Source of the DNA: Macrostomum hystrix
Lineage: Eukaryota > Animalia > Platyhelminthes
NCBI GenBank assembly: GCA_950097015.1
Contig: CATNEN010000038.1
Coordinates: forward strand, 33,356,001-33,420,000
Reading direction: 5' to 3'
DNA: 64,000 nucleotides
Of the stretch, positions 18,853 through 56,919 are shown in pieces (within the stretch, counting starts at the first letter, position 1; every line of letters starts with the position of its first letter). The notes below the pieces were generated by a model. That model did no database searches, was not told the origin of the DNA, and worked only from the letters and a program-made list of their open reading frames with translations. The position numbers were made by a program, and so were the translations under genes.

Positions 18853-20778
18853 ATGTCCGGTTTGTCTCGTCTACTCGCTTTCCTGTTCATCAGTTGGCAG
18901 TGCTGCTCTAGAGCGCTGTGCCAACTGGAACTGGTCGTAGAGACCGAGGATGCAGTATACCATGGCCGCGTGCTATCTCTGAACGTCCAAGTACAACAGC
19001 AGCAAACTGTTGCTCACCTGGGCATCCCCTATGCTCAGCCGCCAGTGCAAATGCTTCGCTTCGCCGCCCCATCACCATGGAGACCAGCGTTGTCACCCAA
19101 AGATAAAAACGCATCTGGCAAGCTGGAATTGAACGCCACTCGGGCTGGCCCTGCGTGCCTGCAGCGGCCGGACCTCATTGGCACACCCAGTCGGATGTCC
19201 GAGGACTGCCTTTATCTAAATATTCAATCACCAACCAGACGAGCCGCTCCGGGAGTGTACAGACCTGTCCTAGTCTGGCTGCACGGTGGGTACTTCGAGA
19301 CTGGGGCCGTCAGCGATCCAGATCAAAATGGCGATGCGATCGCATGGGACCTGGTGGCAACTCGTCAAAACCTGCTAGTAGTTGAGGTCGCCTACCGTCT
19401 GGGAGTGTTTGGCTTCCTGGCCGAGCCCGATGCTGGCAATGGCAACGCTGGACTGAAGGACCAGCAACTAGCTTTAGTTTGGGTGGCACGCAACATCGGC
19501 TACTTCGGTGGCAGCAACGGCTCTGTGACGCTAGCTGGGTTAGACGCCGGTGCCGCGGCGGTCGGTTGGCACATGCTGAGTGAAGGAAGTCGCGGACTGT
19601 TCCAGCGTACCTTCCTTCTCGGAGGTAGTCCTTTAGCCAACTGGGCGTTCGTGCGAGATCGCGAGGCACTGCGCGTAGTACACGAGAGGTTTTATAACCT
19701 TGCTAACTGTACCGACACCAGTGAGCGACTGGCGTGCTTGCGAAACATTTCAGCGGAGAAGCTAAACGCCTACCAGGCGGAGTTCAATCGAGCCTTTGAT
19801 GGGGTGGAATTTCCGGTGGTTGTCGACGGTCAGTTTCTGAAGAAGGATCCAGTTGAAGCATTTGTGCGGGGCGAATTTGAGACGAAGGCAACGGTGCTGG
19901 GGGCGACAAGCTTGGAGGGCATCCAGCTAGGCTATCGTACACTGAGAGCGTTCAATACTAGCAAGCCTACTCTGACTGGACAGGTCTACCTGAATCTGCT
20001 AACCGAAACTTTTCGCTACTTTCCAAGGTTTCCCGAGGAACTAACATCGCTAGGACGGGAGTTCCTCACGCTGCAACTTACCCCATACTCTGGTGAAAAT
20101 TTGGGCGAGAGAAACTTCGATCTGTTGACAAAGGCTTTGTCTCAGCGAGTCACAGTTTGCGAGTCAAACATGCTGGCTGACCTGCTACTGCAGGCTGACA
20201 ATGGACGCGGAGAGGTATTCGTGTATCAGCTGGATGAGCCTGATGGCAACACGGACGAATACCGAGGTGCTGGACACGGAAAGGATGCCGCGTACTTTCT
20301 GGGAGAGCCACTGCGACGAGCTGATTATGACCAGTACCAACGGACCCTTTCTGGCACGATGATGGACCAGCTGGTGACCTTCTTGACGACGGGTAATGTG
20401 TCACAGACTGGCTGGCATGCTAGCAGTATCACTAGGCACGAATTTTACCGCCTTAGGGCGCCACGAAGTGTGAACTTGCGGTCCGAGATTGTTGGCGGTG
20501 GCTTCAGCCGACAGGAATGCCGGATGTGGACTGAAATCCTGCCCCGTCTGGGTGTCATCAGCCCGACAACAACTCCGAAGACCGACGAAGATGCCGAGGC
20601 CAAGTTCTGGGCGCGGTGCAATGCGACCATCAATTTGGTAAGCATGATAGTCATGTGCATTGGTGGTGGCCTGGTGCTGCTTCTCATCCTGTGCGTTGTC
20701 ATCGTGGCAAGAGGACGACGTGGCAGCTCGCATGACCTAGTGGAGTTGTACCAGAGAGTGAAGCCGGCAGGAAAGTGA
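18853..20778 (+). CDS. Carboxylesterase/cholinesterase-like membrane protein, predicted inactive, copy 2
   Basis: 641 aa; six amino-acid differences from copy 1; same GLDAG motif. Confidence 0.93.
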   Translation: MSGLSRLLAFLFISWQCCSRALCQLELVVETEDAVYHGRVLSLNVQVQQQQTVAHLGIPYAQPPVQMLRFAAPSPWRPALSPKDKNASGKLELNATRAGPACLQRPDLIGTPSRMSEDCLYLNIQSPTRRAAPGVYRPVLVWLHGGYFETGAVSDPDQNGDAIAWDLVATRQNLLVVEVAYRLGVFGFLAEPDAGNGNAGLKDQQLALVWVARNIGYFGGSNGSVTLAGLDAGAAAVGWHMLSEGSRGLFQRTFLLGGSPLANWAFVRDREALRVVHERFYNLANCTDTSERLACLRNISAEKLNAYQAEFNRAFDGVEFPVVVDGQFLKKDPVEAFVRGEFETKATVLGATSLEGIQLGYRTLRAFNTSKPTLTGQVYLNLLTETFRYFPRFPEELTSLGREFLTLQLTPYSGENLGERNFDLLTKALSQRVTVCESNMLADLLLQADNGRGEVFVYQLDEPDGNTDEYRGAGHGKDAAYFLGEPLRRADYDQYQRTLSGTMMDQLVTFLTTGNVSQTGWHASSITRHEFYRLRAPRSVNLRSEIVGGGFSRQECRMWTEILPRLGVISPTTTPKTDEDAEAKFWARCNATINLVSMIVMCIGGGLVLLLILCVVIVARGRRGSSHDLVELYQRVKPAGK

Positions 20779-22428
20779 CATTGTGTCAACTTTCTAGTAT
20801 CAAAGATTTGTTACAAACCTCCATCTTACAGTAAGACCCTTATACCGCCACCGCCACTCGGACACTGTATCCACCATTTTCTATTTAATTTCAACGTTGC
20901 TCACATATTACTGTTTCAACGCTACAGTAGCTTTTAAATTTGAATTCTTAAAAAACTGTCCATTGTCGTTTAATGTAAAAAGTATTAATTAAATAACACC
21001 TCTGGTGATTTTTTTAATTCTGTGGCAAGAAGCCAAAAGCAGCATGCCATTTTGTTGCACGGTAGAAGTGGTCTTTGGTTAATTTGAATTTACCTCGATT
21101 TTAATTGCGTTACTATCGTCACTCGACGGTATGCTTTGGCTACAGTGCTTGAACCATAGACATAATCTAGGAAACAGACAATGACAAGTCCGTGGCTGGG
21201 GTCAGCAAGCGTTATTCGCGTCCCTCTGTTTACTGTTTGGTCATGGCCATAGACAAAACGACGACTGCATGAGGAAATTATTGGGTGTTTTCCCCAGAAA
21301 ATGCGGTCTTTTATATCAGCGAAAATGTTAATTTTATGAAAACTATAAAATAGATCTGGCAGACCATCTTTTGGCAGTGAGACCAAGCATTGTTCCCTTA
21401 ATTATTTGTCTATGGACTCAAATAATCAATAGCCTCTGAACCCGGGCTATTGTCTATAATCCATTGCCACACCATTTCGGCATACATGCAGACGGGGAGA
21501 TAAAAGAAGTTTTCAACACTGACGCTTCATCATGTAGCAATACAATAAATCCTTGACTCAAACTACGCTCGTACTTGATTTCCCACTGTCAGTTTTTGTC
21601 TGTTTTCTATTTCTGTCTGTTCGACGGAGCTCTGGATTGGAAATTGCCTAATTACGTTAGAGCAGGGGTCGACATCCTAATATACCTCGCATTAGGACAG
21701 CGGGCCACATTGAATGTGGAGAGATGAGACAGGGGAGCGATGAGACAGCGGAGAGATGAGACAAGAGAGAGATGAGACACGGGAGAGAGATGAGACAGCG
21801 GAGAGATGAGACGGGAGAGAGATGAGATAGCGGAGAGATGAGTAGCGTGAGAGATGAGATGAGAGAAAATTCAAAGGTGCCGGTTTCAGGAGCTTCGAAG
21901 GAAGCATTTGGCGCAGCTGCATCAGTTGCAGGTGCTAAAAAAATAATCGGTTGATAATAAACGAGATTTCTTGATCGGCAACAAAGGTAGAGTAATTTAT
22001 TTTACTGTTCCCTGTTGCATCCATTTTAACTGTCTTGTCGAGTGGTTGGAGCGATTTGAGCAATCGTGAAAAGAGAATTATCCACTGCAGGTATTTTTCA
22101 AGCAATTTTCACTTGAGCACCTGAGCTGTCAAGCACTGCAGTTCCAGCATTCCACTCCTTCAGCAGAGGTCAAATCGTTGAATATTTCTCAATGCTGAAA
22201 TTTCAAAACTATACCGGAATTCAGTCTGTTTTACTTACTGAAACGATTAAAATTCTATACACATATATTATCGTATATTTGTTTAATGAAACTCTATAGG
22301 ATCAGAACTGGAGTAATAAGATAGACATGTCAGTTAACAGATGGTCATTAGTCCTGATCTTGATCATATTTCGCACAGCTGCAGTTGACATAGCGGCATT
22401 CATTGCAGGAGCAGTAGAGCATTGTTTG

Positions 22429-30596: not shown

Positions 30597-33500
30597 CTAG
30601 CAGTCGTATGTGCACAGAAACTGTTGCAGAAATGCGTAGACCAGAAATCCCACGTAAATGATGAAGAATGAGATTCCGATGGCTTTGCCCAGCTTGAAAT
30701 TGGCGATAGCAATCACAAATAGACACACAACCAGTATAATGATCAGGATTATGCCAAACTTCACGTGCGGAATCATCTTCATAACGCCCTGGCAGTAGTA
30801 TTGCTGAAATGTTTTGCCAGATTTTGCAACACCTAATTTAGATTGGTTGAAATATTGTTGTTCATTTTAATTTTTTTTTATAAAGATTCAATTTTTCACA
30901 GCGCGTTTTTATGATGTACAACCGTCTGCCTGGTGCATCCTCTGCAACGTCGGAGAGACATTGGTTCTCTTCTGGTGGGGAGACATTGGTTCTCTTCTGG
31001 TGGGGAGACATTGGTTCTCTGCTGCTTGGGGAGACATTGGTTCTCTGCTGCTTAGGGAGACATTGGTTCTCTGCTGCTTGGGGAGACATTGGTTCTCTTC
31101 TGGTGGGGAGACATTGGTTCTCTGCTGCTTGGGGAGACATTGGTTCTCTGCTGCTTAGGGAGACATTGGTTCTCTGCTGCTTGGGGAGACATTGGTCCTG
31201 TGCTGCTTAGGGAGACATTGGTCCTCTGCTGCTTGGGGAGACATTGGTCCTGTGCTGCTTAGGGAGACATTGGTTCTCTGCTGCTTGGGGAGACATTGGT
31301 TCTCTGCTGCTTGGGGAGACATTGGTTCTCTTCTGGTGGGGAGACATTGGTTCTCTGCTGCTTGGGGAGACATTGGTTCTCTTCTGGTGGGGAGACATTG
31401 GTTCTCTGCTGCTTGGGGAGACATTGGTTCTCTGCTGCTTAGGGAGACATTGGTTCTCTGCTGCTTGGGGAGACATTGGTCCTGTGCTGCTTAGGGAGAC
31501 ATTGGTCCTCTGCTGCTTGGGGAGACATTGGTCCTGTGCTGCTTGGGGAGACATTGGTTCTCTGCTGCTTGGGGAGACATTGGTTCTCTGCTGCTTGGGG
31601 AGACATTGGTTCTCTGCTGCTTGGGGAGACATTGGTTCTCTTCTGGTGGGGAGACATTGGTCCTGTGCTGCTTAGGGAGACATTGGTTCTCTTCTGGTGG
31701 GGAGACATTGGTCCTGTGCTGCTTAGGGAGACATTGGTCCTCTGCTGCTTGGGGAGACATTGGTTCTCTGCTGCTTGGGGAGACATTGGTCCTGTGCTGC
31801 TTAGGGAGACATTGGTTCTCTGCTGCTTGGGGAGACATTGGTCCTGTGCTGCTTAGGGAGACATTGGTTCTCTTCTGGTGGGGAGACATTGGTTCTCTGC
31901 TGCTTGGGGAGACATTGGTCCTGTGCTGCTTAGGGAGACATTGGTCCTGTGCTGCTTGGGGAGACATTGGTTCTCTGCTGCTTGGGGAGACATTGGTTCT
32001 CTGCTGCTTGGGGAGACATTGGTTCTCTGCTGCTTGGGGAGACATTGGTTCTCTGCTGCTTGGGGAGACATTGGTTCTCTGCTGCTTGGGGAGACATTGG
32101 TTCTCTTCTGGTGGGGAGACATTGGTCCTCTGCTGCTTGGGGAGACATTGGTCCTCTGCTGCTTGGGGAGACATTGGTTCTCTTCTGGTGGGGAGACATT
32201 GGTCCTCTGCTGCTTGGGGAGACATTGGTTCTCTGCTGCTTAGGGAGACATTGGTCCTCTGCTGCTTGGGGAGACATTGGTTCTCTGCTGCTTGGGGAGA
32301 CATTGGTTCTCTTCTGGTGGGGAGACATTGGTTCTCTGCTGCTTGGGGAGACATTGGTTCTCTGCTGCTTGGGGAGACATTGGTTCTCTGCTGCTTGGGG
32401 AGACATTGGTCCTCTGCTGCTTGGGGAGACATTGGTCCTCTGCTGCTTGGGGAGACATTGGTTCTCTGCTGCTTGGGGAGACATTGGTCCTCTGCTGCTT
32501 GGGGAGACATTGGTCCTCTGCTGCTTGGGGAGACATTGGTTCTCTTCTGGTGGGGAGACATTGGTCCTGTGCTGCTTAGGGAGACATTGGTTCTCTGCTG
32601 CTTAGGGAGACATTGGTCCTTTGCTGCTTGGGGAGACATTGGTTCTCTGCTGCTTGGGGAGACATTGGTTCTCTTCTGGTGGGGAGACATTGGTTCTCTG
32701 CTGCTTGGGGAGACATTGGTTCTCTTCTGGTGGGGAGACATTGGTTCTCTGCTGCTTGGGGAGACATTGGTTCTCTGCTGCTTAGGGAGACATTGGTTCT
32801 CTGCTGCTTGGGGAGACATTGGTCCTGTGCTGCTTAGGGAGACATTGGTTCTCTGCTGCTTGGGGAGACATTGGTCCTGTGCTGCTTAGGGAGACATTGG
32901 TCCTCTGCTGCTTGGGGAGACATTGGTTCTCTGCTGCTTGGGGGGACATTGGTCCTCTGCTGCTTGGGGAGACATTGGTCCTCTGCTGCTTGGGGAGACA
33001 TTGGTTCTCTTCTGGTGGGGAGACATTGGTTCTCTGCTGCTTGGGGAGACATTGGTTCTCTGCTGCTTGGGGAGACATTGGTTCTCTGCTGCTTGGGGAG
33101 ACATTGGTTCTCTGCTGCTTGGGGAGACATTGGTTCTCTGCTGCTTGGGGAGACATTGGTTCTCTGCTGCTTGGGGAGACATTGGTTCTCTGCTGCTTGG
33201 GGAGACATTGGTTCTCTGCTGCTTGGGGAGACATTGGTTCTCTTAAAAAAATGATATTTTTTTACGGCTAAGGTTGTCACCCCGAAGAGGATTATGTTTT
33301 GGCCACCCGGAGGAGTGAATCAGCTTATTGAGGGGATAGTTAGCTCAATGAGTTAAAAAATTATTTTGATTGGATGAATAGCCTTTTTTGAGGATAATTT
33401 GCTTAATTAGGGTATTAATTAGATCCCCTATTGCCGCCTCTACTTCCTGGAGGGGAGCTAAAATTGCAAGTGAAGTTCCAATGTGAAAAACCCGATTATT

Positions 33501-36500: not shown

Positions 36501-39500
36501 TGCCTTCGGGCGCAGGAATCCCTCCACGCTGTCCCGTCAGCTGACCCATGGGTACACGCCCCGCGAGTGTTCAAGGCTGCCCCTAGGGCAGCCGGACAGA
36601 ATGGGCAACAGCGCTGGATGACCCATCCAGGGCCCCTGGCCAAAATGGGCACCTCTAGCCCCGGCTGGAGGGAAAGGTGTCACCCTTTGACCTTAACAGG
36701 GTATGCGGCCTGTCCGCAGCGTTCGTGCACCTGTGCGTGATCAGGTACCTCTGGCTACGGCTCTGAGGGAAAGGTGTCACCCTTTGACCTCAACAGGGTA
36801 TGCGGCCAGTCCGCATTTTTCGTGCACCTGTGCGTGATCAGGTACCTCTGGCTACGGCTCTGAGGGAAAGGTGTCACCCTTTGACCTCAACAGGGTATGC
36901 GGCCAGTCCGCAGCGTTCGTGCACCTGTGCGTGATCAGGTACCTCTGGCTACGGCTCTGAGGGAAAGGTGTCACCCTTCGACCTTTAACAGGGCATGCGG
37001 CCAGTCCGCAGTTTTTCGCCCACCTGTGCGTGATCAGGTACCTCTGGCTCCGGCTCGGGGGGAAAGGTGTCACCCTTCGACCTTAACAGGGTATGCGGCC
37101 AGTCCGCAGCGTTCGTGCACCTGTGCGTGATCAGGTACCTCTGGCTACGGCTCTGAGGGAAAGGTGTCACCCTTCGACCTTTAACAGGGCATGCGGCCAG
37201 TCCGCAGTTTTTCGCCCACCTGTGCGTGATCAGGTACCTCTGGCTCCGGCTCGGGGGGAAAGGTGTCACCCTTCGACCTTAACAGGGTATGCGGCCAGTC
37301 CGCAGCGTTCGTGCACCTGTGCGTGATCAGGTACCTCTGGCTACGGCTCTGAGGAAAAGGTGTCACCCTTCAACCTCATAGGGTACGCAGCCAGTCTGCG
37401 GGCCCGGCACAGCCTTTTGTGCTCTCCAATGCCTAAGGTCACACCGCGCCGAGGGGCTGGGAGGTCCGGGGAGTAATCCGGCCATTAGCGGTCCTCCATT
37501 CCTTTTTTTTTCTTTGCATTCCAGCGATTTCTCGGTGATATGGAATCAAACAACCAAAAACAAACGATGGAGATCGAGGAGGTACCCACGCATCGCGAAG
37601 GGCCCTCTTCGGACAACATCACGACCACAGCAGGACCAAGCCATCCAGGACCTGCCCCACCCGGCATCGGGCCCAACGAGCCACTTAGCGCCAAGCTGAG
37701 TAGCACGTCCGGTGCAGCCCGCCGCAGACGCCTCAAGGCCAAGCTACTGGCCTCGGGTGCCCTCGAAGTGTCGAACCCTCGGCTTAGGCCGAAGGAGGCC
37801 CAGCCAGCCATTACGGGAGGCCGTCAGCCCACCTGTCCGGCCCCTGAGGAAGGCAGGGCGCCCGAAGCCAATGAAGGGTACTCTCTACCGACTTCTTCAA
37901 GTGCTTTGGACCCTCAGTCCGGTGCCAGTGTAGCCCAGCCAGCCAGGGCGGCGGGCGTGGAAGGCCCTCGGTCCCCACGCCCTGCCGCCCAGGAGGGTGG
38001 GGCCTCTGGCTCCGCGACTGGGGGGGATCGCAGCAGGCCCACCTTCGCCGCCGTCGCAAGGAGGCAGCCGGCGATCGTCATCCTTGGCAGGGACGCGCGT
38101 CTGACTGCCGACCAGCTGACACAAGCTAGCCGCGTCATCGACGGGCTCCTGTGGAAGCAAACCCTCAAGGGCACGCCCCTGGCCATTAAAACTCACGCCA
38201 CGCGGGACTCGTGCCTGCTCATCTGGCCCAGCGACGCCGAGTCAGGACGGCGCCTCCTGGAGATGCTGCCTGAGCAGAGCTGGGAAGCCAATATGGCATT
38301 TTACCGAGAAGACGAGCCACCCCAGACGAAGAGGCACCGCATCTTCGTTCCGGCGGCTAGTGTCGTTACCTCTTCAGAAGAGTTGCGAAACGGATTGCTA
38401 GCAGTCAATCGCGACTTACCTGCCGCGGGCCTAGTGGTGCACGACACCATTCAGCATCCCGAGGGTCGGGGCTTCACCGCCATTCTTGGTCTGTCGGACG
38501 TCTGGATGCGCAAGTACCCAGACGACACACAGATCGCCATCGGCCTCCTAAAGCTGCGCATCAGAGCTTTTGAGGCAGACAAGCGCCGGAAGCAGGGCGT
38601 GAACCCTACCGAGGCGGCAGCCGAAGGAGCGTCGGCCCCTAAGGCTGCTAGGCCCTCGGTCAGGAGACACAAAGCCCAGCATAGCCACGATGGAAAGGCA
38701 GAACGCGCTGCTGAGGGGGGCTCCGATCGTCACCCAGCACGCTCCACTAAAAGGAAAGGCCTGCTGCAGAGAGCTGCGGAGGCAGTCCAGTCAGCAAAGC
38801 TGACCCACCTCAGGAGAGAGGCTTCCGGCCTGTTGAGGCGGGCAGCCCAGCCTAGGGCGACTGGCGGCGCCACCGTTGGGCCTAGCTCCATGGAGCAGGG
38901 ACCTCGGGGACCACGCCAAATTGCCCAGGGCGGGACTCTCACCGAGACCATGGGCACCACGCAGATGGTGGGCTCCGCTACGGGAGAAAACAGGGCGTCT
39001 CAGGATGCCCAATACCCGCCCGCAGGTCAGGAGCCTGACCCTGTGGGGGAGCCCATGGAGACCGGCAGCCCCCGTCATCTCCCTATTACTGAAGAGGAGG
39101 AAGAGGGCCTCCTGGCCCAATCCCCTCAGAAACCAGAGGAACATCAATGAGTGAAAATTTTTGTTGCCTCCAAATAAACTCTCAGCACTGCGTGGCGGCA
39201 TCGGTTAACCTGCTGCGCGTGGCTGAGAGCACGCTCCCGAGCCTCATTTTTGTTCAGGAGCCCTGGCTTTCCAAAGGTAAGTCTACCAATATACCTTCGG
39301 GTTTTGACTGTTTTTGCATGGCGAACACCCCTCGCCCCAGATCTTTGATCCTTGCCGCAAATTCTCTGAAAGCGTGGATGAGACCCGACCTTTCCACCGG
39401 GGACATCTGCGTGATCCAAACCCTGCACATAGTGCAGCGTAAGTCTACTCTGGTGGCGTCGGTCTACCTGCCAGGCGATGCCCCCACGGTTAGCGATGCG

Positions 39501-42500
39501 TTGGTAGCTCTCTGTGACTACGCGCAGGCGCGCAATTTCGAGCTCCTCATTGCCGGTGATGTGAACGCACACCACACGCACTGGGGTAGTAAGAACATCA
39601 ACGACCGCGGCGAAGAGCTCCTCGCTTTCGTCGGTGGCACCAACCTTAATTTCTGCAATGTCGGAAGCACCCCGACTTTCGACAATGGCCGCTGGTCGGA
39701 GGTCCTCGACGTCACCCTCGCCTCCCCGGGCGTCCTCGCCAGGATATCCGGATGGAGGGTGTGGGGAGAAGAAGAGTCCCTCTCTGACCATCGCTTCATC
39801 CGTTTCGAGGTTGCAAATGCTACCCCGAAAAAAACTATCACCTGGAGCAGAAACGTCCGAAACACCGATTGGACCAGGTTCGGCCTTGAGCTGAGCAGGG
39901 GCCTGCGCGACATCGGCACCCCGGGTGAAATCACAAACTGTGACACTGCTGACGAGTTGGCCTCCAAGCTTGGAGGCACGGTCATCAATGCCTATGAGGC
40001 GGCCTGTCCCCTCAAAGCCTATAAAGGCAAAAAATCTGCCCCCTGGTGGAACCCCGAGCTCGGAATCCTGAGAAAACGAGCCAAGGCTCTGCAGAGGAGA
40101 TCTCTAAAAACCAGGACTCCTGAAGACAGAGAAGCCTATGTCCATGCTAGTCATGAGTTCAAGGGCCAAGTCAGAAGGGCAAAAGCGGCAAAATGGCGCC
40201 AATACTGCGAAGGGCTTGAGGGCTCCCGCCCCACTGCCCGCGTGGTAAAAGCGCTCACCCAAGACCGCTTCTCCAAACTATCCGTGGTAAAGAGGCCTGA
40301 TGGGTCCACCACAGATACGCCGGAAGAGACGCTCCAGCTCATGCTCGGGCATTTCTTCCCCAGCAACCAGACAGCGCAGGGCCAGCCAGACCACACTGTG
40401 GGCGGGCAAGGTCTAGCAAAGTCTCTCGTCACCAAAGACCGCATCATCCGTGCGGCAAAGTCCTTTAATCCATACAAGGCTCCGGGCCCAGACGGCATTT
40501 ACCCGGCTTTCTTGCACGAGGCAGTGAAAAATCCCTGCTTCCTGGACATTCTCTGTCAGCTTCTGCGGGCCTGCGTGGAGCTGGGCTATGTACCAGCCAC
40601 CTGGAGGGAGGCCCGCGTGGTCTTCCTTCCCAAGCCCGCAAAAGACGACTATCAATCAGTCAAGGCCTACCGTCCTATCAGCCTGACTTCCTCCTTACTG
40701 AAGCTGCTTGAGAGACTGGTGCTCTGGCGCCTCCTCTCTGTGGAGCTCAAACGCTTCCCTCTCTCTCAGAACCAGCACGCCTTTAGGGCCGGCAGATCCA
40801 CTGAGAGCGCCCTCCACTCCATCGTGGAAAAGCTGGAACGAGCAGTGCTGGGTAACAGTTTTGCTCTTTCCGTCTTCATCGACATCGAGGGGGCCTTCGA
40901 CAACGTCCGTTTCGAAGCGTTCCGTAGAGCTCTTGAATCTAGAGCCACGCACCCCCACCTTGTCCGCTGGATTATGTACATGATCCAACACCGCTCTGTT
41001 GTGGCCAACCTCAATGGGCACACGCTTTCAGCGCCATGTCCAGAAAGGGGGCCCTCAGGGCGGGGTCCTTACTCCTCTTCTTTGGAATCTTGTCATGGAT
41101 GAGCTGCTTGAAGATGCTCCGCAAGATCCGGTCCAAAAAGTGGGATACGCCGATGATGTGACCGCCACCTGTGCGGGACCTTCAGCGGAAACCACCAGAG
41201 ACCTCGTTCAGGGTTTCATCAACAGAGCTGAAAGCTGGGCGACCCGCTGCGGGCTCAGACTCTCCGAGTCCAAGACCGTGGCGATCATGTTTACCAGCAA
41301 GCTGCTTTGGACCATAAAACCCCTCACTCTCTACGGCAAGGACATCGCCATGAGCAAGCAAACTCGCTGCCTTGGTCTGATCTTGGACCATAGGTTAAAC
41401 TGGAGTCACCACCTCCGTTTCAAAACCAAGAGGGCCCTGGCGACCCTGGCGCAAGTCAGGCGAGCCGTTGGCACCACTTGGGGCCTCACCCCCCAGAAGC
41501 TCTGGTGGATCTACACCACGATCATCAGACCCTCGATCTCGTACGCCAGCCTCATATGGGCTAGCGCCACTAGCACCCAGGGAAACCTGGATGCGCTTTA
41601 CAGGGTGCAGGGCAGAGCCTGTCGCATGACCTTGGGCGCCTCACCCTCCACCCCCTTCGAAGGCATGAACGCCTTCCTGGGAGCCACCCCTCTGGACATT
41701 TTCGTCAAGGGAGAGGCCGCGAAGAGCACCAGGCGACTCATGGATGCCGGTGTGACCTTCAAATTCTCGAGGGCCTTCAAAAAGCGCTCTCTCGCTCCCC
41801 ACTCCGATCTTTGCCTCAAGATTCTGGGCGAGTGCGAAGGGCTTTACATCCTCTCCGATGCTATACCCGCCACTCTGATCCTGAGCCACAGGTACAAGGT
41901 CGAAATTCCAGCCTCGCCATGAGGCAAACGACAGCTGGGCCGACTCTGAAATCCACTGTTATACCGACGGCTCCATGATGAACGGAATCTCTGGTTTCGG
42001 AGCCTGTATCTACAAGGGAGGAGAGGTCGCCTGGACTCACTCCCAGCACACTGGAAAAAACTCCAGCGTTTTTCAGAACGAGATGCTCGCCATCAGTTCT
42101 TGTGCAGCAGAGCTGCGCCTGAGGGGGCTCACTGACCGGAAGATCTTCTTCCACTCCGACAGTCAAGCCGCCCTCCGGGCCCTCGACCGAAGCACCACCT
42201 GCTCTAAGACTACCTTGGACTGCCATGCCCAGCTCAATGAGCTGGCGCGGGCAAACGAGGTCAAGCTCAAATGGATCCCAGGCCACGCTGGCTTCCCAGG
42301 GAATGAGATGGCGGACCAGCTCGCAAAAGCTGGAGCAGCCAGCACCCTGGCGGGACCAGAACCTGGCGCTCCTATCCCCGCCAATGTGACCAACCTCAAG
42401 CTAAAACGCTGGATGGAGACACAGCATCTGGACAGATGGACCAAGACCCAGAACTGCAAGCAATCTAGGGCAGCGGTCCCTTGTCCGTCTCACCGCCTGC

Positions 42501-45500
42501 GCAAAGCCCTCTTAAAGCTAAACCGCAGGGATCTCCGCGCAGTCAGCATGGCCCTCTCAGGTCATGGCTGCTTCTCTCGGCACCGCTTTCTCCAGGGCCA
42601 GCTCCTGGAGGACAAATGCACTTTTTGTAGTTCGGGCAGTGAAAACGCCGAACACTTTATCTGCCAATGCCCAGTTTTCACCAGGGCAAGGCTTGAACAC
42701 CTTGGGCCTAACCCAACTCTCTCCGATGTTTGCAGGCCCGAGAGCATCCCTCAGCTTGCCCGGTACCTCCGGGATACTGGGCGAGCCAACGTCTTTCCCA
42801 CGGACAGTGCGGAGGACCAAGCTGCAGGCGAGTCCAACGGGCCACCCTGAGCAACACCACCTCTCCCTGAGGTCGTCTGGTTTGCCAGGGGTTAGCGGAA
42901 TGGGCGGTCCTCTCCGCCTCCTCGCTGCGTCCGTCGGTACGGAGCACCCTGCAGCTAAGTCAAGTAAGTCAATACAATTCAGTTCTCAAACTCAAAAATC
43001 ACATACTTAAACTTGAACAAAAAATCCACAAACCATTTGCAATGATTCTCAGCTTCCGCAAGCCGGTCCATGAGCCTGCTATTTAGCACCATGATGACAA
43101 TGTACAGCGCGTACAGAACTAGCAATATCACCGCGTCCCAGATCTGTACCACAGAGTCGTACATCACAAAGATGAAGAACAGAATAGAGACCAGGTACCA
43201 AGTGGCGTCGCGAGCCAAAGGTCGCCAGTCTAAGGTCAGAACCTGAGGTTCGGTTTTTCGGAATTGTCTTTTTAAACCTTTTGTATTTAGAATGAGTCAA
43301 TTTGTTACTTTGAGTCACTCCCTAAGCACTCTCTATGTCACAGCGTTACTTAAAATTACAAATTTATAAGCTTGTAACTTTGTTATTTTTGCTAGTGCTT
43401 TCTAAGAAAATAAATTTAAATCTCAAGTTTCTAAGAATCATATCCGATGAAGTCTGACAATTAAATATATTTAAGTACAGTGTCAGCAGCCGTAATGTAC
43501 AGTAAGTGAAGAGAATGCCAGTCTCACCTGTCCAGCGAAGGCTGCTGAAAGTGACACAATCACTAGCAGGTTGAACACGGCGGACCTGCGGGTTTTTAAT
43601 TACTCGGTGAGATTTAGAAGGTGCATAAGTTCGGATAATTCACTCACCCTGCAATGGTGCCCCACAACCTTCACTCACCCTGCAATGGTGCCCACATCCT
43701 TCACTCAACCTGCAATGGTGCCCACATCCTTCGCTCACCCTGCAATGGTGCCCACATCCTTCACTCACCCTGCAATGGAGCCCACACCCTTCACTCAACC
43801 TGCAATGGAGCCCACACCCTTCACTCACCCTGCAATGGTGCCCCACACCCTTCACTCACCCTGCAATGGTGCCCCACACCCTTCACTCACCCTGCAATGG
43901 TGCCCTGCACCCTTCACTCAACCCTGCAATGGTGCCCCACAACCTTCACGATCAACCTGCAATGGTGCCCCACAACCTTCACTCAACCCTGCAATGGTGC
44001 CCCACAACCTTCACTCACCCTGCAATGGTGCCCCACACCCTTCACTCACCCTGCAATGGTGCCTCACTCCCTTCACTCACCCTGCAATGGTGCCCTGCAC
44101 CCTTCACTCAACCCTGCAATGGTGCCCCACAACCTTCACTCAACCCTGCAATGGTGCCCCACAACCTTCACTCAACCCTGCAATGGTGCCCCACAACCTT
44201 CACTCAACCCTGCAATGGTGCCCCACACCCTTCACTCACCCTGCAATGGTGCCTCACTCCCTTCACTCACCCTGCAATGGTGCCCTGCACCCTTCACTCA
44301 ACCCTGCAATGGTGCCCCACAACCTTCACTCAACCTGCAATGGTGCCCCACAACCTTCACTAAACCCTGCAATGGTGCCCCACACCCTTCACTCACCCTG
44401 CAATGGTGCCCTGCACCCTTCACTCAACCCTGCAATGGTGCCCCACACCCTTCACTAAACCTGCAATGGTGCCCACACCCTTCACTCACCCTGCAATGGT
44501 GCCCACACCCTTCACTCACCCTGCAATGGTGCCCCACACCCTTCACTAAACCTGCAATGGTGCCCCACACCCTTCACTAAACCTGCAATGGTGCCCCACA
44601 CCCTTCAAACAACCTGCAATGGTGCCTCACACCCTTCACTCACCCTGCAATGGTGCCCACACCCTTCACTCAACCTGCAATGGTGCCTCACACCCTTCAC
44701 TCAACCTGCAATGGTGCCCCACACCCTTCACTCACCCTGCAATGGTGCCCCACACCCTTCACTCACCCTGCAATGGTGCCCCACACCCTTCACTCACCCT
44801 GCAATGGTGCCTCACACCCTTCACTCACCCTGCAATGGTGCCCTGCACCCTTCACTCAACCCTGCAATGGTGCCCCACACCCTTCACTCACCCTGCAATG
44901 GTGCCCTGCACCCTTCACTCAACCCTGCAATGGTGCCCCACACCCTTCACTAAACCTGCAATGGTGCCCACACCCTTCACTCACCCTGCAATGGTGCCCA
45001 CACCCTTCACTCACCCTGCAATGGTGCCCCACACCCTTCACTAAACCTGCAATGGTGCCCCACACCCTTCACTAAACCTGCAATGGTGCCCCACACCCTT
45101 CACTCAACCTGCAATGGTGCCTCACACCCTTCACTCACCCTGCAATGGTGCCCACACCCTTCACTCAACCTGCAATGGTGCCTCACACCCTTCACTCAAC
45201 CTGCAATGGTGCCCCACACCCTTCACTCACCCTGCAATGGTGCCCCACACCCTTCACTCACCCTGCAATGGTGCCCCACACCCTTCACTAAACCTGCAAT
45301 GGTGCCCCACACCCTTCACTAAACCTGCAATGGTGCCCCACACCCTTCACTCAACCTGCAATGGTGCCTCACACCCTTCACTCACCCTGCAATGGTGCCC
45401 ACACCCTTCACTCAACCTGCAATGGTGCCTCACACCCTTCACTCAACCTGCAATGGTGCCTCACACCCTTCACTCAACCTGCAATGGTGCCCCACACCCT

Positions 45501-47285
45501 TCACTCACCCTGCAATGGTGCCCCACACCCTTCACTCACCCTGCAATGGTGCCTCACACCCTTCACTCACCCTGCAATGGTGCCCTGCACCCTTCACTCA
45601 ACCCTGCAATGGTGCCCCACACCCTTCACTCACCCTGCAATGGTGCCCTGCACCCTTCACTCAACCCTGCAATGGTGCCCCACACCCTTCACTAAACCTG
45701 CAATGGTGCCCACACCCTTCACTCACCCTGCAATGGTGCCCACACCCTTCACTCACCCTGCAATGGTGCCCCACACCCTTCACTAAACCTGCAATGGTGC
45801 CCCACACCCTTCACTAAACCTGCAATGGTGCCCCACACCCTTCACTCAACCTGCAATGGTGCCTCACACCCTTCACTCACCCTGCAATGGTGCCCACACC
45901 CTTCACTCAACCTGCAATGGTGCCTCACACCCTTCACTCAACCTGCAATGGTGCCCCACACCCTTCACTCACCCTGCAATGGTGCCCCACACCCTTCACT
46001 CACCCTGCAATGGTGCCCCACACCCTTCACTAAACCTGCAATGGTGCCCCACACCCTTCACTAAACCTGCAATGGTGCCCCACACCCTTCACTCAACCTG
46101 CAATGGTGCCTCACACCCTTCACTCACCCTGCAATGGTGCCCACACCCTTCATTCAACCTGCAATGGTGCCTCACACCCTTCACTCAACCTGCAATGGTG
46201 CCTCACACCCTTCACTCAACCTGCAATGGTGCCCCACACCCTTCACTCACCCTGCAATGGTGCCCCACACCCTTCACTCACCCTGCAATGGTGCCTCACA
46301 CCCTTCACTCACCCTGCAATGGTGCCCACACCAGCATCGGAGTCAAAAGACACGGCAGCCAGCGAGCTGAACAGCTCGGGTGCAGACGATCCGGCAGCCA
46401 TGAAGGTGGCGCCGGCCACATCCTCTGACAGTTTCAACTTCTCCGAAATCACTTCCAGGGAAGGCACAAAGAAGTCGTCGCAGATGATAGCCATTGCTGG
46501 TCGTTAAATTACAAGTTGATGACAAACTGTATCACTTTATTAACTTTATTAACTTTTCATCCATCAATGTCAACTCGACTATTTCTCACCGATGAACGTG
46601 ATGATCGTCACGACTATGTACAGCACAATCCATCCGGCCAGACTGTTGGTGGACTTTTCAAAGTCGCAGCTTTCCCAGGCCACTCCGGAGTGACTGGATG
46701 CGTTCACCACTTCGCATTTGTAGTTGTAGTGAATGCTGGTGTTTACTGTGACAAACAACAGCTGCCGACTGACCAGTAGGGCGTCTGGAGGAGATTGATA
46801 ATTGAGTGAGATAAGGTTGATAATGTGTTGAGATAAGATTGATAATTGATGGGGTGGGATAAGATTGGTGATGGAGTGAGATAAGATTGATAATGTAGCG
46901 AGATAAGATTGATAATATATTGAGACAAGATCGAGAATGTGGCGAGATAGGATTGATAAAGTAGTAGGACGAGATAAAAATTTAGATGAGACTAGGGTGA
47001 TATTGAGGATAAATTAAGGGCACTGATGTTATATTGGATACTGCAGTGGTTGTATTAAAGACTGATAATAAAATGAGGTGGCTTACCTGCTTGGGCCAAG
47101 GGCACCACATCTCTGACCCCAAAGTAGCCCCACCTGTAGGCGGCTGCAGCAGCGGACGCGAGTACTAGAAAACAAGCCGCCGCAGATGCGCACCTGCCCG
47201 GAGATTGCCTAGCAACCAGGCGAGAGTAGCCCAGACTGCGATCCCACTGACCCTTGCGCTGTCGTGCTGAGTAGAGTCGGACCAT
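30597..47285 (-). CDS. K+-dependent Na+/Ca2+ exchanger (SLC24/NCKX family), 12 exons, about 660 aa
   Basis: Exons 47285-47087, 46784-46590, 46496-46313, 43585-43528, 43242-43007 (or 43034), 36262-36205, 35656-35525, 35447-35379, 35005-34686, 34270-34117, 33691-33521, 30803-30597. All GT-AG and phase-consistent (1983 nt). Alpha-1 repeat [13 protein letters not shown]...GVGTIAGSAVFN; alpha-2 repeat LAAGTSIPD...GSNVFDI. Confidence 0.92.
30953..33243. repeat. 25/26-bp minisatellite (about 88 units) in the last NCKX intron
   Basis: Unit ggggagacattggttctctgctgctt, with interspersed variants ...cttctggt and agggagacattggtcctgtgctgctt. Confidence 0.97.
36660..37400 (+). repeat. About 98-bp tandem monomers (about 7.5 copies) in the LINE 5' UTR
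   Basis: Repeated gggaaaggtgtcaccct...gtgatcaggtacctctggct; two alternating variants give a 196-bp period in the 3' part. Confidence 0.95.
37540..39150 (+). CDS. LINE ORF1 (gag-like), 536 aa
   Basis: Long ORF whose stop overlaps the ORF2 start (ATGA). SGAARRR and TFAAVA motifs are typical of ORF1 in this group. Confidence 0.8.
   Translation: MESNNQKQTMEIEEVPTHREGPSSDNITTTAGPSHPGPAPPGIGPNEPLSAKLSSTSGAARRRRLKAKLLASGALEVSNPRLRPKEAQPAITGGRQPTCPAPEEGRAPEANEGYSLPTSSSALDPQSGASVAQPARAAGVEGPRSPRPAAQEGGASGSATGGDRSRPTFAAVARRQPAIVILGRDARLTADQLTQASRVIDGLLWKQTLKGTPLAIKTHATRDSCLLIWPSDAESGRRLLEMLPEQSWEANMAFYREDEPPQTKRHRIFVPAASVVTSSEELRNGLLAVNRDLPAAGLVVHDTIQHPEGRGFTAILGLSDVWMRKYPDDTQIAIGLLKLRIRAFEADKRRKQGVNPTEAAAEGASAPKAARPSVRRHKAQHSHDGKAERAAEGGSDRHPARSTKRKGLLQRAAEAVQSAKLTHLRREASGLLRRAAQPRATGGATVGPSSMEQGPRGPRQIAQGGTLTETMGTTQMVGSATGENRASQDAQYPPAGQEPDPVGEPMETGSPRHLPITEEEEEGLLAQSPQKPEEHQ
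39147..42850 (+). pseudogene. LINE ORF2 (AP endonuclease, RT, RNase H, CCHC finger) with two frameshifts
   Basis: VQEP, GDVNAH, SDH (APE); YRPISL, PQGGVL, GYADD (RT); YTDGS, DSQAAL, WIPGH, GNEMAD (RNase H); CTFC...EHFIC. Frame breaks near 41025 and 41909. Confidence 0.9.
43640..46331. repeat. 30-32-bp minisatellite (about 87 units) formed from the NCKX exon 3/intron 3 junction
   Basis: Minus-strand unit GTGGG(G)CACCATTGCAGG|GTGAGTGAAGGGT. A 742-bp higher-order period is visible in the ORF track (44619/45361, 45083/45825). Confidence 0.97.
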
Positions 47286-49398: not shown

Positions 49399-50790
49399 GT
49401 GAATAAAATTTCAGAATGGCTGAAACATCCGAAACTCAACCTAAGCTACTTTCCGAACGAGCTTGTTAGCGGATTGACAACAGAGGAGTTGACTAGTCAA
49501 GCTGAATTGAACGCAATGAACGATCTCGTGGAGAAAGTGATGTATGAGGACACCGACTGTCCAACGCTGGATGCCTCTGGATGGTTCACTCTGCTGCCTT
49601 CAACAGAAGATACCATAAAGGAACTAGAAGCTATTGTTGGCCAGCAGTACGACGCAACGAAAGTTCAATCCACTGAGAAGCAAGAAGTTGCGGCTGTTCG
49701 TAAACTGAAGGTTTTTTTGACAGCTCATTCGCTTAATTGCGACATCGACAACTGTACGTGATATTGCATATCTGGCTGAAAAACTAAAGTACTTTTACGC
49801 GACGCTACGAAAGGATGACAAGTCCTTCTATGCACCGACTACGCTTATCTGCTGGAGAGCTGGGCTCTTCCGGTATTTTCTGCGTGTTCGCCAGTTGAAC
49901 ATCATCGAAAACGTCGCATTTGCGCAGGCAAATTTGGCACTTAAGGCTGTTGGCCGTCTGTTCCTTAAAGCCGGTGGGAGGATCCTACATTTTAAAGCAA
50001 TTTGTAAGGAGGACATGGAGAAGCTGGCGTTCTACTTTGACCGGTAATCTCCCACCGTGTTGTGATGTGACAAGAGGTGTACTTTGTTCTCGTGTATTTT
50101 TTTGGTCAACGCGGTCGTGAGTGGTATCGTGGATTGACGACTGAAAGTCTGGTTTTTGAGACCAACAACGTGTGCGGAACTGTCATTCGTCTACGGACTG
50201 GGCTGCAAAAGACTTTGGGCGCTAGACTCTCGACAGGTGCAATGAACGACAACAAGGAAGCGGTCATCCGGGCTACTGGTGGAACCCAATGCCCTGTGCA
50301 GGCCGTTCAACTGTACCTTGAGAAGCGTAGCTCCACCGCTGGTTTGACGGAAGACTCGCCGCTGCTTCTGACGCCCAAAAAGAAGCCGGTTTTCGGCGCA
50401 CCTTGGTTCACCAAGATTCCACTTGGTGTGAACAGTGTCGGTGCAATGATGAAGGCAATATCGACATCGGCTGGATTGTCCAAGGAGTACACATCGCATT
50501 GCATTCGACCGACTGTCATCTCTGATCTTCACGAAGCTGGTTTTTCGGTTGGAACAAATTTGCAACATCACGGGTCACAAGGAGACCAAGACTGTTCAAA
50601 GGTTAGTACAAGTGAGATATGTTTGTTAAACAGTAAATTTAATTTACTCTACATTCTCAATGTACTATACATTATCCTACACTACACAGGTACCTGACGC
50701 ATGGAAAGCGCAAGGCCACGGAGAGTGGCTTCGCGCACTCGTTTTATGGCCATTATTTAACGCCGAAACATACTACAGTATATAATCTAC
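49399..50790 (+). mobile_element. Degenerate Crypton-like tyrosine recombinase gene with a spliceosomal intron
   Basis: LKYFYATLRKDDKSFYAPTTL (49780 region), FFGQRGRE (catalytic R), CPVQAV, SHCIR (HxxR). After a frameshift near 50548: ITGHKETKTVQR|Y across a GT-AG intron at 50602-50689. Several stops and frameshifts. Confidence 0.8.
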
Positions 50791-51766: not shown

Positions 51767-52050
51767 ATCTATCAATCTATCCATCTATCTATCTATCTAT
51801 CTATCCATCTATCTATCTATCGATTTATCTATTTATCTGTCTATCTATCCATCAATCTATCTATATATCTATCCATCTATCTATCTATCCATCAATCCAT
51901 CTATCTATTTATCCATCCATCTATCCATATATCCATCTATCTATTTATCTATCTATCCATCAATCTATCTATATATCTATCCATCTATCTATCTATCCAT
52001 CAATCCATCTATCTATTTATCCATCCATCTATCTATCTATCTATCTATCT
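51767..52050. repeat. (ATCT)n/(ATCC)n microsatellite
   Basis: Direct reading. Confidence 0.97.
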
Positions 52051-52314
52051 AGCACAGCTATGCATCCCTCGAAAACAGCTTCGCTGACAGCACATCATGT
52101 TAAGGGCCTAGTAACTGTTATTTTAGTTGTTTTTTATCATGAAGTGTTTATTTGCCGCTGAATTTAACTTTGAAATGACCAAAGCAATTTACTGTATAAA
52201 TTTCTATGAACAACAAAATTATGTTCTCAGAACACCTGTTAATCAAGTGATGTTGTGCTATTCGCTCAGATTATAGCTGGCATTCTTAGTCTATGGTTCC
52301 AGGCGTTGTACACC

Positions 52315-52858
52315 TTACTGCAGCTTCTGCAGCTTCTGGCTTAAAATGAAATTGGTACAGAAGCACTGGCAGGGCATGTCGCTGCTACCGTAGTTATACC
52401 AGCTTCTGGGGCATTGAAATGCCACCTGGCACAGATGACGACAGGTCATGCGCCAATTAGCGATTAGCTTGGCTGCGGGTAGCGGGTGGAATCGGGTGTT
52501 TAGTCGTTAGATTTAACAATATTAAATGTTTGGTCATACACTATAGTCAAACAAAGGCGTCCCACAAAGGCGTTAGTTGCAAGCCACAAGCCACAAGCCA
52601 ATTTGCGAGAGGGCAACGCGTTCGACCGCTCTGCAACTCACCCCCGTGTGTGACTTTCCTTTCTATTTATTTTGCATCCCCCAGTTACAAAGTGCTCAGA
52701 TTTTATTTACCGTGAGCAGCCGGGATGAAAGACAGACGCTTTCGCAGCCCAACCAAGGCAGGAGGGTCGGCAGACACCGCAGCTCCATTCGTCAGCGACA
52801 CCGCGATGACAGCGGCTATCAGAGTCAGCAGAATCCAGGGGCGAATCATTGGTCCCAT
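52315..52858 (-). CDS. Secreted cysteine-rich prepropeptide, 101 aa (family member 2)
   Basis: Exon 1 52858-52711 (MGPMIRPWILLTLIAAVIAVSLTNGAAVSADPPALVGLRKRLSFIPAAH), donor GTAAAT, phase-1 intron, acceptor CCGCAG. Exon 2 52472-52315 (AKLIANWRMTCRHLCQVAFQCPRSWYNYGSSDMPCQCFCTNFILSQKLQKLQ*). Confidence 0.85.
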
Positions 52859-52955
52859 CTTGACTGTGCTCAGCGTTCAGATTCGCAAGAGGCTCTGTTC
52901 GATACGGTAGATGCTCGGTCGGCAGCAGGTTCCGCTTCGGGGCAACGAGCGGCGA

Positions 52956-52964
52956 TATTTATAG
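52956..52964 (-). promoter_or_regulatory. Putative TATA box of peptide gene 2
   Basis: ctataaata on the minus strand, about 100 nt upstream of ATG 52858. Confidence 0.55.
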
Positions 52965-53453
52965 GGCCAGAGCAAGGACAGGACTACTCAGTTGGGGTTG
53001 CGGCTGCGAGCAGCCAATGAGAATCAGTTAATGTCGTTCAAATAAAAAAGCGGGGGCGGCTGTGAAGGCGGACTCAATTGAGCCGGTCTCAGCTGTGGTC
53101 TGATGTCGCTTGCTTACGACCGTCTTTGATTAATCAAACCTAGTCAAAGGAGACTGCCAGTACTACCGTCTTTGCCGCTTTCATATTTTCTTGTGATCAA
53201 CGCGTTGAGAACTTTTGCTTCTGGTTCTAATGAAAACGCGGCGAAATTTCCGCCTCGGAAACAACAGATTACTGAACCGCTATTGAGGACTGGGATAATC
53301 GCTTGGGATCTGGCAAAAACAAGTAAGGGGGACTCATTTAGCAAGGAGACTCTTCTGGAATTGAATTTTTCTAGGTGATGCTTGGTAGGTCTTACCTCAG
53401 GATTTTCTGAGTTCTGAGTCTTACCTGAGGATTTTGGAGAGTAGTTAGTCCTA

Positions 53454-54311
53454 CCTCCTTTCGAAGGCATGAACGCCTTCCTGGGAGCCACTCTTTTGGA
53501 CATCTTCGTCAAGGGAGAGACCGCGAAGAGCACCAGGCGCCTCATGGATGCCGGCGTGCCTTTCAATTTCTCGAGAGCCTTCAAAAAGCGCTCTCTCACT
53601 CCCCACTCCGATCTCTGCCTAAAGATTCTGGGCGAGTGCGAAGGGCTCAACATCCGCTCCGATGCAATACCCGCCACTCTGATCCTGAGCCACAGGTACA
53701 AGGTCAAAATTCAGCCTCGCCAGGAGGCAAACGACAGCTGGACCGACCCTGAAATCCACTGTTATACCGACGGCTCCCTGATGAACGGAATCTCGGGATT
53801 CAGAGCCTGTATCTAGCTCGTACAAGGGAGGAGAGGTCGCTTGGACTCACTCCCAGCATACTGGGAAAAACTCCAGCGTTTTTCAGAACGAGATGCTCGC
53901 CATCAGTTCATGCGCTCAGGGCATGGCTGTTTTTCTCGGCATCGCTATCTCCAGGGCCAGCTCCTGGAGGACAAATGCACATTCTGTAGCTCGGGCAGTG
54001 AAAACGCCGAGCACTTTATCTGCCCAGTTTTCACCAGGGCAAGGCTTGAACACCTTGGGCCTAACCCAACTCTCTCCGATGCTTGCAGGCCCGAGAGCAT
54101 CCCTCAGCTTGCCCGGTACCTTTGGGATACTGGGCGAGCTGACGTCTTCCCCACCGACAGTGCGGAAGACCACGCTGCGGGCCACCCTGAGCAACACCAC
54201 CTCTCCTGAGGTCGTTTGGTTTGCCAGGGGTTAGAGGAATGGGCGGTCCCCTCCGCCTCCTCGCTGCGTCCGCCGGTACGGAGCACCCCGCAGTTAAGTC
54301 AAAGTAAGTCA
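53454..54311 (+). mobile_element. 5'-truncated copy of the LOA-like LINE with an internal RNase H deletion
   Basis: Matches about 41652-42970 minus about 450 bp; 11-bp TSD AGTTAGTCCTA (53443-53453, 54312-54322). Confidence 0.92.
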
Positions 54312-55072: not shown

Positions 55073-56450
55073 GCGTAGATTCTTGGTAGGACCGTAAAAC
55101 TATTAGCGTAGATTCTTGGTAGGACCGTAAAACTATTAGCGCAGATTCTTGGTAGGACCGTAAAACTATTAGCGTAGATTCTTGGTAGGACCGTAAAACT
55201 ATTAGCGCAGATTCTTGGTAGGACCGTAAAACTATTAGCGCAGATTCTTGGTAGGACCGTAAAACTATTAGCGCAGATTCTTGGTAGGACCGTAAAACTA
55301 TTAGCGCAGATTCTTGGTAGGACCGTAAAACTATAAGCGCAGATTCTTGGTAGGACCGTAAAACTATTAGCGTAGATTCTTGGTGGGACCGTAAAACTAT
55401 TAGCGTAGATTCTTGGTAGGACCGTAAAACTATTAGCGTAGAATAGCGTTAGGCGTAGATTCGTGGTAAGAACCGTAGCTATTTAAGCGTAGATTCGTGG
55501 TAAAAACCGTAGCTATTTAAGCGTAGATTCGTGGTAAAAACCGTAGCTATTTAAGCGTAGATTCATGGTAAGAACCGTAGCTATTTAAGCGTAGATTCAT
55601 GGTAAGAACCGTAGCTATTTAAGCGTAGATTCATGGTAAGAACCGTAGCTATTTAAGCGTAGATTCGTGATAAAAACCGTAGCTATTTAAGCGTAGATTC
55701 GTGATAAAAACCGTAGCTATTTAAGCGTAGATTCATGGTAAGAACCGTAGCTATTTAAGCGTAGATTCATGGTAAGAACCGTAGCTATTTAAGCGTAGAT
55801 TCATGGTAAGAACCGTAGCTATTTAAGCGTAGATTCATGGTAAGAACCGTAGCTATTTAAGCGTAGATTCGTGATAAAAACCGTAGCTATTTAAGCGTAG
55901 ATTCATGGTAAGAACCGTAGCTATTTAAGCGTAGATTCATGGTAAGAACCGTAGCTATTTAAGCGTAGATTCGTGATAAAAACCGTAGCTATTTAAGCGT
56001 AGATTCGTGATAAAAACCGTAGCTATTTAAGCGTAGATTCATGGTAAGAACCGTAGCTATTTAAGCGTAGATTCATGGTAAGAACCGTAGCTATTTAAGC
56101 GTAGATTCATGGTAAGAACCGTAGCTATTTAAGCGTAGATTCGTGGTAAGAACCGTAGCTATTTAAGCGTAGATTCATGGTAAGAACCGTAGCTATTTAA
56201 GCGTAGATTCGTGGTAAGAACCGTAGCTATTTAAGCGTAGATTCGTGGTAAGAACCGTAGCTATTCAAGCGTAGATTCGTGATAAAAACCGTAGCTATTT
56301 AAACGTAGATTCATGGTAAGAACCGTAGCTATTTAAGCGTAGATTCATGGTAAGAACCGTAGCTATTTAAGCGTAGATTCGTGGTAAGAACCGTAGCTAT
56401 TTAAGCGTAGATTCGTGGTAAGAACCGTAGCTATTCAAGCGTAGATTCAT
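55073..56450. repeat. Bipartite satellite: 33-bp unit (about 11 copies) then a related 34-bp unit (about 29 copies)
   Basis: gcgtagattcttggtaggaccgtaaaactatta, then gcgtagattcatggtaagaaccgtagctatttaa. Confidence 0.97.
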
Positions 56451-56919
56451 GTTAGGACCGTTGCTAATGGCGTAAATTCTAGGTAGGACCGTAACTACAA
56501 GCGTAAAATTCAAGGTAGCAGTAAAACTATTAAAACAAAAGTAAACAAATAGTTTAAACAAGAGTGAAACAGCTAGCATTTTGTATTTTCTCAATTCGTT
56601 TGGAAATGTGGGCGCCGTGGCAAAGGGTTATTAGCATGAGTCTGGATGTGAGAGAAGAACTCCAAATACTGAGATGACTGACAGTCAGAACGCACGAAAC
56701 GTTACGGAGGCATAACCAAGGCTGGCGAAAAAACGAAAGTCAATTTATTTTAGACATTCCATGCAGCTATTAGTCACACCTGAGTCACAGTCACTTGAGG
56801 CCATCCATGCACACCGCATATAGTTATGTTTACAAGGAGCTGCAATTATCTGTAAAAATAGAATCGTACCATGAATTTCCTGCAAAAATCATTGCCATCG
56901 TGCTTTTGAACATTTTTTA

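Follow-up and report, generated by a model that had tools for sequence, protein, structure and literature searches.

A small gene on the minus strand at 52858-52315, referred to below as member 2, is a genuine, transcribed and spliced two-exon gene of the 64,000-nucleotide stretch of Macrostomum hystrix DNA analysed here (the window). Reciprocal searches identify it as the single M. hystrix orthologue of M. lignano Mlig016917, a hypothetical protein that public databases already list. The predicted peptide is conserved between these distant Macrostomum species, and the conservation of its mature part is what purifying selection on a processed peptide would leave. The best reading of the member 2 family is a genus-restricted, uncharacterised, processed peptide of signalling or defence type. 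A second gene of the window, member 1 (9003-8643), is probably its paralogue, mainly on the grounds of gene structure and linkage.

The two coding exons of member 2, both on the minus strand, extend from an ATG at 52858-52856 (context gtcaagATGg) to a TAA stop codon at 52317-52315, as read from the sequence. The coding part of exon 1 (52711-52858, minus strand, 148 nt) translates as MGPMIRPWILLTLIAAVIAVSLTNGAAVSADPPALVGLRKRLSFIPAAH plus one nucleotide and comprises the signal peptide, a short pro-piece, the RKR site, LSFIPAAH, and the first base of a split codon. The intron (52473-52710, minus strand, 238 nt, GT..AG) is of phase 1, lies eight codons past RKR, and has a GTAAAT donor from 52710 and a CAG acceptor up to 52473; the residue that it splits is Ala, a detail added to the original prediction. 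The coding part of exon 2 (52315-52472, minus strand, 158 nt including TAA), defined by transcript contigs and by alignment with the orthologue, encodes the six-cysteine domain (A)KLIANWRMTCRHLCQVAFQCPRSWYNYGSSDMPCQCFCTNFILSQKLQKLQ. The signal peptide, RKR, the phase-1 intron after the cleavage site and the 158-nt coding exon 2 proposed in the original prediction are all present in the sequence, and so is the TATA box proposed upstream (TATAAATA, 52963-52956, minus strand), which lies about 40-45 nt before the point where the transcript contigs begin (5’ ends at 52911-52917). About 50 nt further upstream the sequence contains a CCAAT-box-like element (53014-53018, minus strand), which reads ATTGG on the gene strand and is therefore inverted. 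The 5’ UTR covers at least 52859-52917 (minus strand; from the sequence and the contigs) and contains no upstream ATG in this interval. The 3’ UTR (52108-52314, minus strand) carries AATAAA at 52152-52147, and the contigs end 8-39 nt downstream of this signal. At the 3’ end of the intron (52473-52509, gene strand), its final 36 nt contain no stop in the exon 2 frame and translate as RLNTRFHPLPAA, which is faintly like the exon-1-coded SFIPAAHA; a six-frame match of the M. lignano protein ran through it, the likeness probably being due to chance.

Transcript evidence came from four public runs of a single 2020 study, stored as assembled contigs and mapped to 51900-53400. The share of sampled words of the region 52150-53000 found in the four runs, 59%, is that expected for the mRNA part only. 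Each run contained one contig (4/4 runs), 540-567 nt long, covering 52108-52472 and 52711-52917 with 0 mismatches and omitting exactly the 238 nt of the intron, whose CT..AC ends on the plus strand correspond to GT..AG on the gene strand. The 52711/52472 junction, named in the original prediction as a check to be made, was found in the contigs of all four runs without a mismatch; these transcript-derived sequences bear out the gene model together with its splice site and reading frame. Since the contigs join 52711 to 52472, they fix the reading frame of member 2 and provide the limits of its transcript. No sign of a spliced leader was seen in the four contigs, the ends of which had no loose or unmatched letters. 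From their intron-less form we infer that the contigs are of RNA origin, the library type being off record; they bear on the presence and splicing of the member 2 transcript rather than on its expression level or tissue.

The member 2 precursor is 101 aa long and consists of a signal peptide, the RKR site and the domain W-x3-C-x3-C-x5-C-x13-CxCxC-T. The signal peptide was assigned from its hydrophobic core only (ILLTLIAAVIAV, mean Kyte-Doolittle hydropathy 3.17 over 12 residues). Signal and KR cleavage, the disulfides and the type of function of the peptide are predictions from the sequence. The signal peptide would be cleaved off co-translationally, probably behind VSA or GAA, as the chain enters the secretory pathway, and an enzyme of the furin or prohormone-convertase type would then cut after RKR. 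The product would be a secreted cationic peptide of about 60 residues (net charge about +5) with three disulfides in the framework W-x3-C-x3-C-x5-C-x13-C-x-C-x-C. The net charge of the exon-2-coded part is +5 in both genes of the window, and that of the M. lignano mature peptide is +7. Neither an amidation signal nor a pyroglutamate position is present in the member 2 sequence. At the DNA level, the pattern of W-x3-C-x3-C-x5-C occurs three times in the window versus 0.09 times expected from shuffles, all three occurrences being in members 1 and 2. Genome-wide, a DNA pattern of the cysteine framework gave about 20,700 matches versus about 7,800 for the control and was swamped by CTG/CAG repeats.

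Homologues were sought with single-exon translations or with the natural M. lignano protein as the query. A HMMER search with a profile of exon-2 translations against 1.84 billion representative proteins yielded three matches: two repeat proteins and, over the whole domain, a 99-aa M. lignano precursor (E 4.4e-6) annotated as “hypothetical protein BOX15_Mlig016917g3”. Two further copies, g1 and g2, differ from it at few residues (accessions of g1, g2 and g3: PAA58189.1, PAA88211.1 and PAA94439.1; UniProt A0A267EBK7). In the reverse direction, Mlig016917g3 matched only the member 2 locus in the M. hystrix genome (52339-52512, E 4.4e-17), and this reciprocity is the ground on which the two genes are considered orthologues. 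A word-indexed homologue search with the exon-2 frame of member 2 gave no candidate, as the orthologue shares too few 5-mers with it. No member 1 orthologue was found in the profile search of the same 1.84 billion proteins. Protein and profile searches of the 220,453,370-base genome (42 contigs) found member 2 once, member 1 twice as identical copies, and no other loci; six weaker matches within the genome all lack the cysteine framework.

The M. lignano and M. hystrix precursors are close in length (99 and 101 aa) and share a signal peptide, a short pro-piece, a KR site, and the cysteine framework, in which the loops are of the same size (3/5/13/1/1). Where the member 2 intron falls, the M. 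lignano sequence is SAHAKVIAHW, with Ala likewise at the place of the split codon. The exons of member 2 were compared separately with Mlig016917g3, this being the one other species in the comparison. Identity is 27% in the signal and pro part (11/41), 75% in the eight residues past KR (6/8), 63% in exon 2 up to three residues past the sixth cysteine (26/41), and 17% in the C-terminal tail (2/12). The mature core, comprising the eight post-KR residues and this part of exon 2, is therefore 65% identical (32/49), as compared with 11/41 in the prepro region (Fisher p = 3e-4), and includes SFIPxAHAK, WRMxCRH and SWYNYG. The kept positions span the cysteine-free N-terminus, SFIPxAHAKxIAxWRM, as well as the loops, with CRH, AF, SWYNYG and PCQC; one loop is RHL in one orthologue and RHF in the other. 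Besides the signal and pro part and the tail, the two species differ in gene number, M. lignano having three near-identical copies. For comparison, the 641-aa carboxylesterase-family ORF at 11829-13754 has its best M. lignano matches at 62-69% and the next animals at 34%, so that the mature core of member 2 is about as conserved as this neighbouring gene.

The searches led to no family assignment for these proteins. Apart from a weak somatostatin match, neither the exons of members 1 and 2 nor the M. lignano proteins were placed in a family by Pfam at E up to 10. The somatostatin/cortistatin match (E 0.13-0.18) is confined to the unconserved tail of two M. lignano copies and was taken as chance; the FWK core motif of somatostatin is absent from member 2. 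Two M. lignano copies bear the automatic UniProt label “WSC domain-containing”, which was rejected, there being no Pfam WSC match at E up to 10. A sequence search of the PDB returned only chance Myb matches with E above 1. In the ESM Atlas, the clusters nearest to the whole protein were arthropod toxin/defensin precursors at 0.76-0.78, a level reached by shuffled sequences as well, and the mature part had no match. AlphaFold2 gave a mean pLDDT of 51 for the M. lignano precursor and 52 for member 1 exon 2, too poor for fold comparison; the low-confidence model of member 1 consists of a helix followed by a beta hairpin, and Foldseek with these models found no match. A literature search found no mention of Mlig016917 and nothing on this peptide family under Macrostomum neuropeptides, cysteine-rich peptides or cis-defensins, and the gene was not found in supplements of PMC10468722.

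Member 1 is predicted from the sequence on the minus strand at 8643-9003, with 118 coding nt in exon 1 (9003-8886), an 85-nt phase-1 intron six codons past KR (8885-8801), and a 158-nt exon 2 (8800-8643). Its predicted 91-aa precursor has AKR followed by QFGISY(M)ETQQFWSSLCSRVCVRLPTC-x15-CECSCT. About 40 nt upstream of its TATA box lies CAGCCAAT. As an addition to the original prediction, member 1 was found to be present twice: the second copy (15666-16026, minus strand) is identical to the first over at least 1 kb and 7023 nt away from it. Both copies belong to a tandem duplication with a period of 7023 nt (7916-14832 and 14939-21859, 99.2% identical), with one member 1 gene in each unit. Each 7-kb unit also contains an intron-less 641-aa ORF of the carboxylesterase/cholinesterase family (11829-13754 and 18853-20778) with a signal peptide and a C-terminal membrane anchor, the two copies differing at few residues. 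The duplication thus takes in an unrelated gene as well; the doubling of member 1 is a recent segmental event rather than an expansion specific to the peptide.

The window contains several repetitive and mobile elements as well. A full-length non-LTR retrotransposon occupies 37540-42850, with ORF1 at 37540-39150 and ORF2 in pieces at 39147-42850 (endonuclease, reverse transcriptase and RNase H). A truncated 3’ copy of a non-LTR retrotransposon, 92% identical to the full-length element over 256 nt, was found at 53457-54210, about 500 nt upstream of the member 2 TATA box. Three long minisatellite arrays are located at 30874-33300, 43640-46400 and 55313-56600, with periods of about 26, 31 and 34 nt, and strong GC skew is seen in the first two. 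ORFs at 49399-50697 resemble, by eye, the C-terminal domain of a tyrosine recombinase (Crypton-like) or a domesticated relative.

Members 1 and 2 have in common two exons, a phase-1 intron soon after KR, the framework W-x3-C-x3-C-x5-C...CxCxC-T and a cationic peptide. They differ in the third loop, which has 15 residues in member 1 and 13 in member 2 as originally predicted, in the 85-nt intron of member 1, and in most of exon 2, which is 24% identical; little besides the W, the six cysteines and the T is shared, also in agreement with that prediction. The mature N-terminus of member 1 is Gln and may become pyroglutamate, unlike that of member 2. The proposal that the two genes are paralogues fared unevenly: the shared architecture is real, but the sequence tests are marginal. 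BLASTP between the two gave E 0.07, over the CxCxC tail; hhalign of the member 2 profile with member 1 gave E 0.009 and a probability of 4%, with the W and all six cysteines aligned; and composition-preserving shuffles gave p 0.045, a value that was 0.03 when the M. lignano sequence was included. From the sequence as such, kinship is marginally suggested (p 0.01-0.07). Because of this, the case for paralogy rests on the landmark codons, the length of exon 2, the intron phase, the strand and the linkage. The W and the first three cysteines occupy codons 6, 10, 14 and 20 of exon 2 in both members; exon 2 has 158 nt in both, despite the two-residue difference in the third loop; the sixth cysteine is followed by T in both; the phase-1 intron lies 6-8 codons past KR in both; the CCAAT and TATA promoter layout is common to both; and the genes lie on one strand at a distance of 36-44 kb from each other.

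The alternative, that the two are unrelated secreted-peptide genes sharing a cysteine framework and a phase-1 intron by chance, appears improbable. Phase 1 is the commonest intron phase beside signal-peptide exons, and the marginal sequence statistics given above are in line with such a coincidence, as is the existence in this genome of a separate group of four genes in which a signal peptide, KR and a phase-1 intron go together with CxxxC..C..CxCxC and loops of other lengths. However, chance does not readily account for identical codon positions of the W and three cysteines, for equal exon 2 lengths with a T after the last cysteine, for linkage on one strand, or for a W-x3-C-x3-C-x5-C pattern expected 0.09 times per window. 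Their wide divergence fits better with an old duplication, after which each copy was conserved.

The separate group shows that this build recurs in the genome, so that intron phase and CxxxC..CxCxC by themselves say little about kinship, and it is the exact positional identities that count for members 1 and 2. One of its genes (G000:C38:4481493-4481895, that is L042:5493-5895, plus strand) has two exons, a signal peptide, DKR and the framework CxxxC-x9-C-x10-CxCxC, with a phase-1 intron four codons past DKR. Its paralogues at G000:C7:6024607-6024729, C38:8135332-8135436 (minus strand) and C29:1292451-1292558 all have phase-1 acceptors. The group shares a signal peptide, KR, the phase-1 intron and the framework (F/Y)CTxxC-x9-C-xGY(F/L)N-x5-CxCVC; a terminal G or GGR in two of its members could be an amidation signal. 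The outer pattern CxxxC..C..CxCxC is common to this group and members 1 and 2, whereas loop lengths and landmark positions are not, and a profile-profile comparison aligned the CxCxC part only (E 0.0013, probability 18%). A wider superfamily uniting the group with members 1 and 2 is rather doubtful. A more elaborate version is also unlikely, namely that they form a Macrostomum-wide superfamily of conserved signalling ligands whose cystine-stabilised helix/strand fold would be rearranged, the usual N-terminal cysteine having moved into the C-terminal CxCxC.

As for function, we give about an even chance to the member 2 peptide being an extracellular signalling ligand, hormone-like or neuropeptide-like. 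This role is favoured because the conserved part is the released peptide, including its unstructured N-terminus, and because the gene is not expanded. Since the part following the cleavage site is far better conserved than the signal and pro part, the released peptide would act through a specific, conserved molecular interaction. The precursor has sequence features expected of a peptide hormone or neuropeptide precursor: a signal peptide, a basic cleavage site, and a released peptide that is the most conserved part. Six-cysteine neurohormones of the eclosion hormone and ITP/CHH types likewise are single long disulfide-rich peptides made from short precursors in which the mature part is better conserved than the leader; their cysteine spacing differs from that of member 2, and no sequence or family match to them was found. 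Against a ligand, a cationic, hydrophobic and disulfide-rich peptide fits an antimicrobial peptide equally well, and the missing amidation signal and pyroglutamate of member 2 also count against it. Host defence, with the released three-disulfide peptide acting as a defensin-like antimicrobial on microbial membranes or cell-wall precursors and CxxxC and CxC forming a cystine-stabilised helix and strand core, is a credible but distinctly less likely role. The CS-alpha-beta (cis-defensin) motif combines CxxxC with a downstream CxC, canonically as C..CxxxC..C..CxC. Invertebrate defensins and short scorpion toxins of this class resemble member 2 in being small, secreted, cationic peptides with three disulfides, a prepro precursor, and both of these elements; the charge of +5 in the window genes and +7 in M. 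lignano, the helix and hairpin of the low-confidence member 1 model, and the arthropod toxin/defensin neighbours in the ESM Atlas, at 0.76-0.78 and below the meaningful level, point the same way. Yet CS-alpha-beta peptides have a cysteine before CxxxC and end in CxC, whereas member 2 has none before it and ends in CxCxC. Membership is supported neither by this cysteine order (CxxxC-x5-C-x13-CxCxC) nor by Pfam, which gave no defensin or toxin match at E up to 10; likewise there was no HMM or PDB-sequence match, nor a Foldseek match of the low-confidence models. Antimicrobial peptide families do not usually combine a strongly kept cysteine-free N-terminus with a variable signal, and no expansion of the gene is seen.

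The original prediction had favoured a diversifying effector with a conserved scaffold and hypervariable loops. Such a peptide could be toxin-like, belong to the seminal fluid or be antagonistic in some other way, its cysteine scaffold being fixed and its loops under positive selection. Members 1 and 2 do have little in common besides the W, six cysteines and T. Conotoxins combine a conserved signal peptide with a hypervariable mature peptide in large gene families. Member 2 resembles the cone-snail toxin superfamilies in its prepro architecture and fixed cysteine framework, but here it is the signal that varies and the mature part that is conserved, in one or two gene copies; frog-skin peptide families, too, show the reverse pattern, with a conserved signal and a hypervariable mature part. 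The proposal is unsupported, because the loops of the orthologue are kept (RHL/RHF, SWYNYG, PCQC) along with the cysteine-free N-terminus, the mature core is better conserved than the prepro part (65% versus 27%), the latter being the fastest-evolving region, and no lineage-specific expansion is seen. Member 2 is single-copy in the 220-Mb genome, and the duplication of member 1 is the recent 7-kb event that includes an unrelated gene. A recent genome duplication has been published for M. lignano (PMC10468722), and the three near-identical Mlig016917 copies fit it. Fast evolution has been reported for Macrostomum reproduction-related genes (PMC10468722), which speaks for a diversifying effector; taken together, we regard this role as very unlikely.

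Member 2 is a verified, spliced and conserved orphan peptide gene in a flatworm genus that serves as a model for regeneration and sexual selection. Comparison with the orthologue indicates that the large difference between the paralogues should not be taken as arms-race diversification. If the superfamily including the second group is real and has the rearranged fold, it would represent a new variant of the defensin/toxin scaffold recruited for hormone-like use in flatworms. If the peptide is a ligand, it would lend itself to RNAi and to receptor de-orphanisation in M. lignano.
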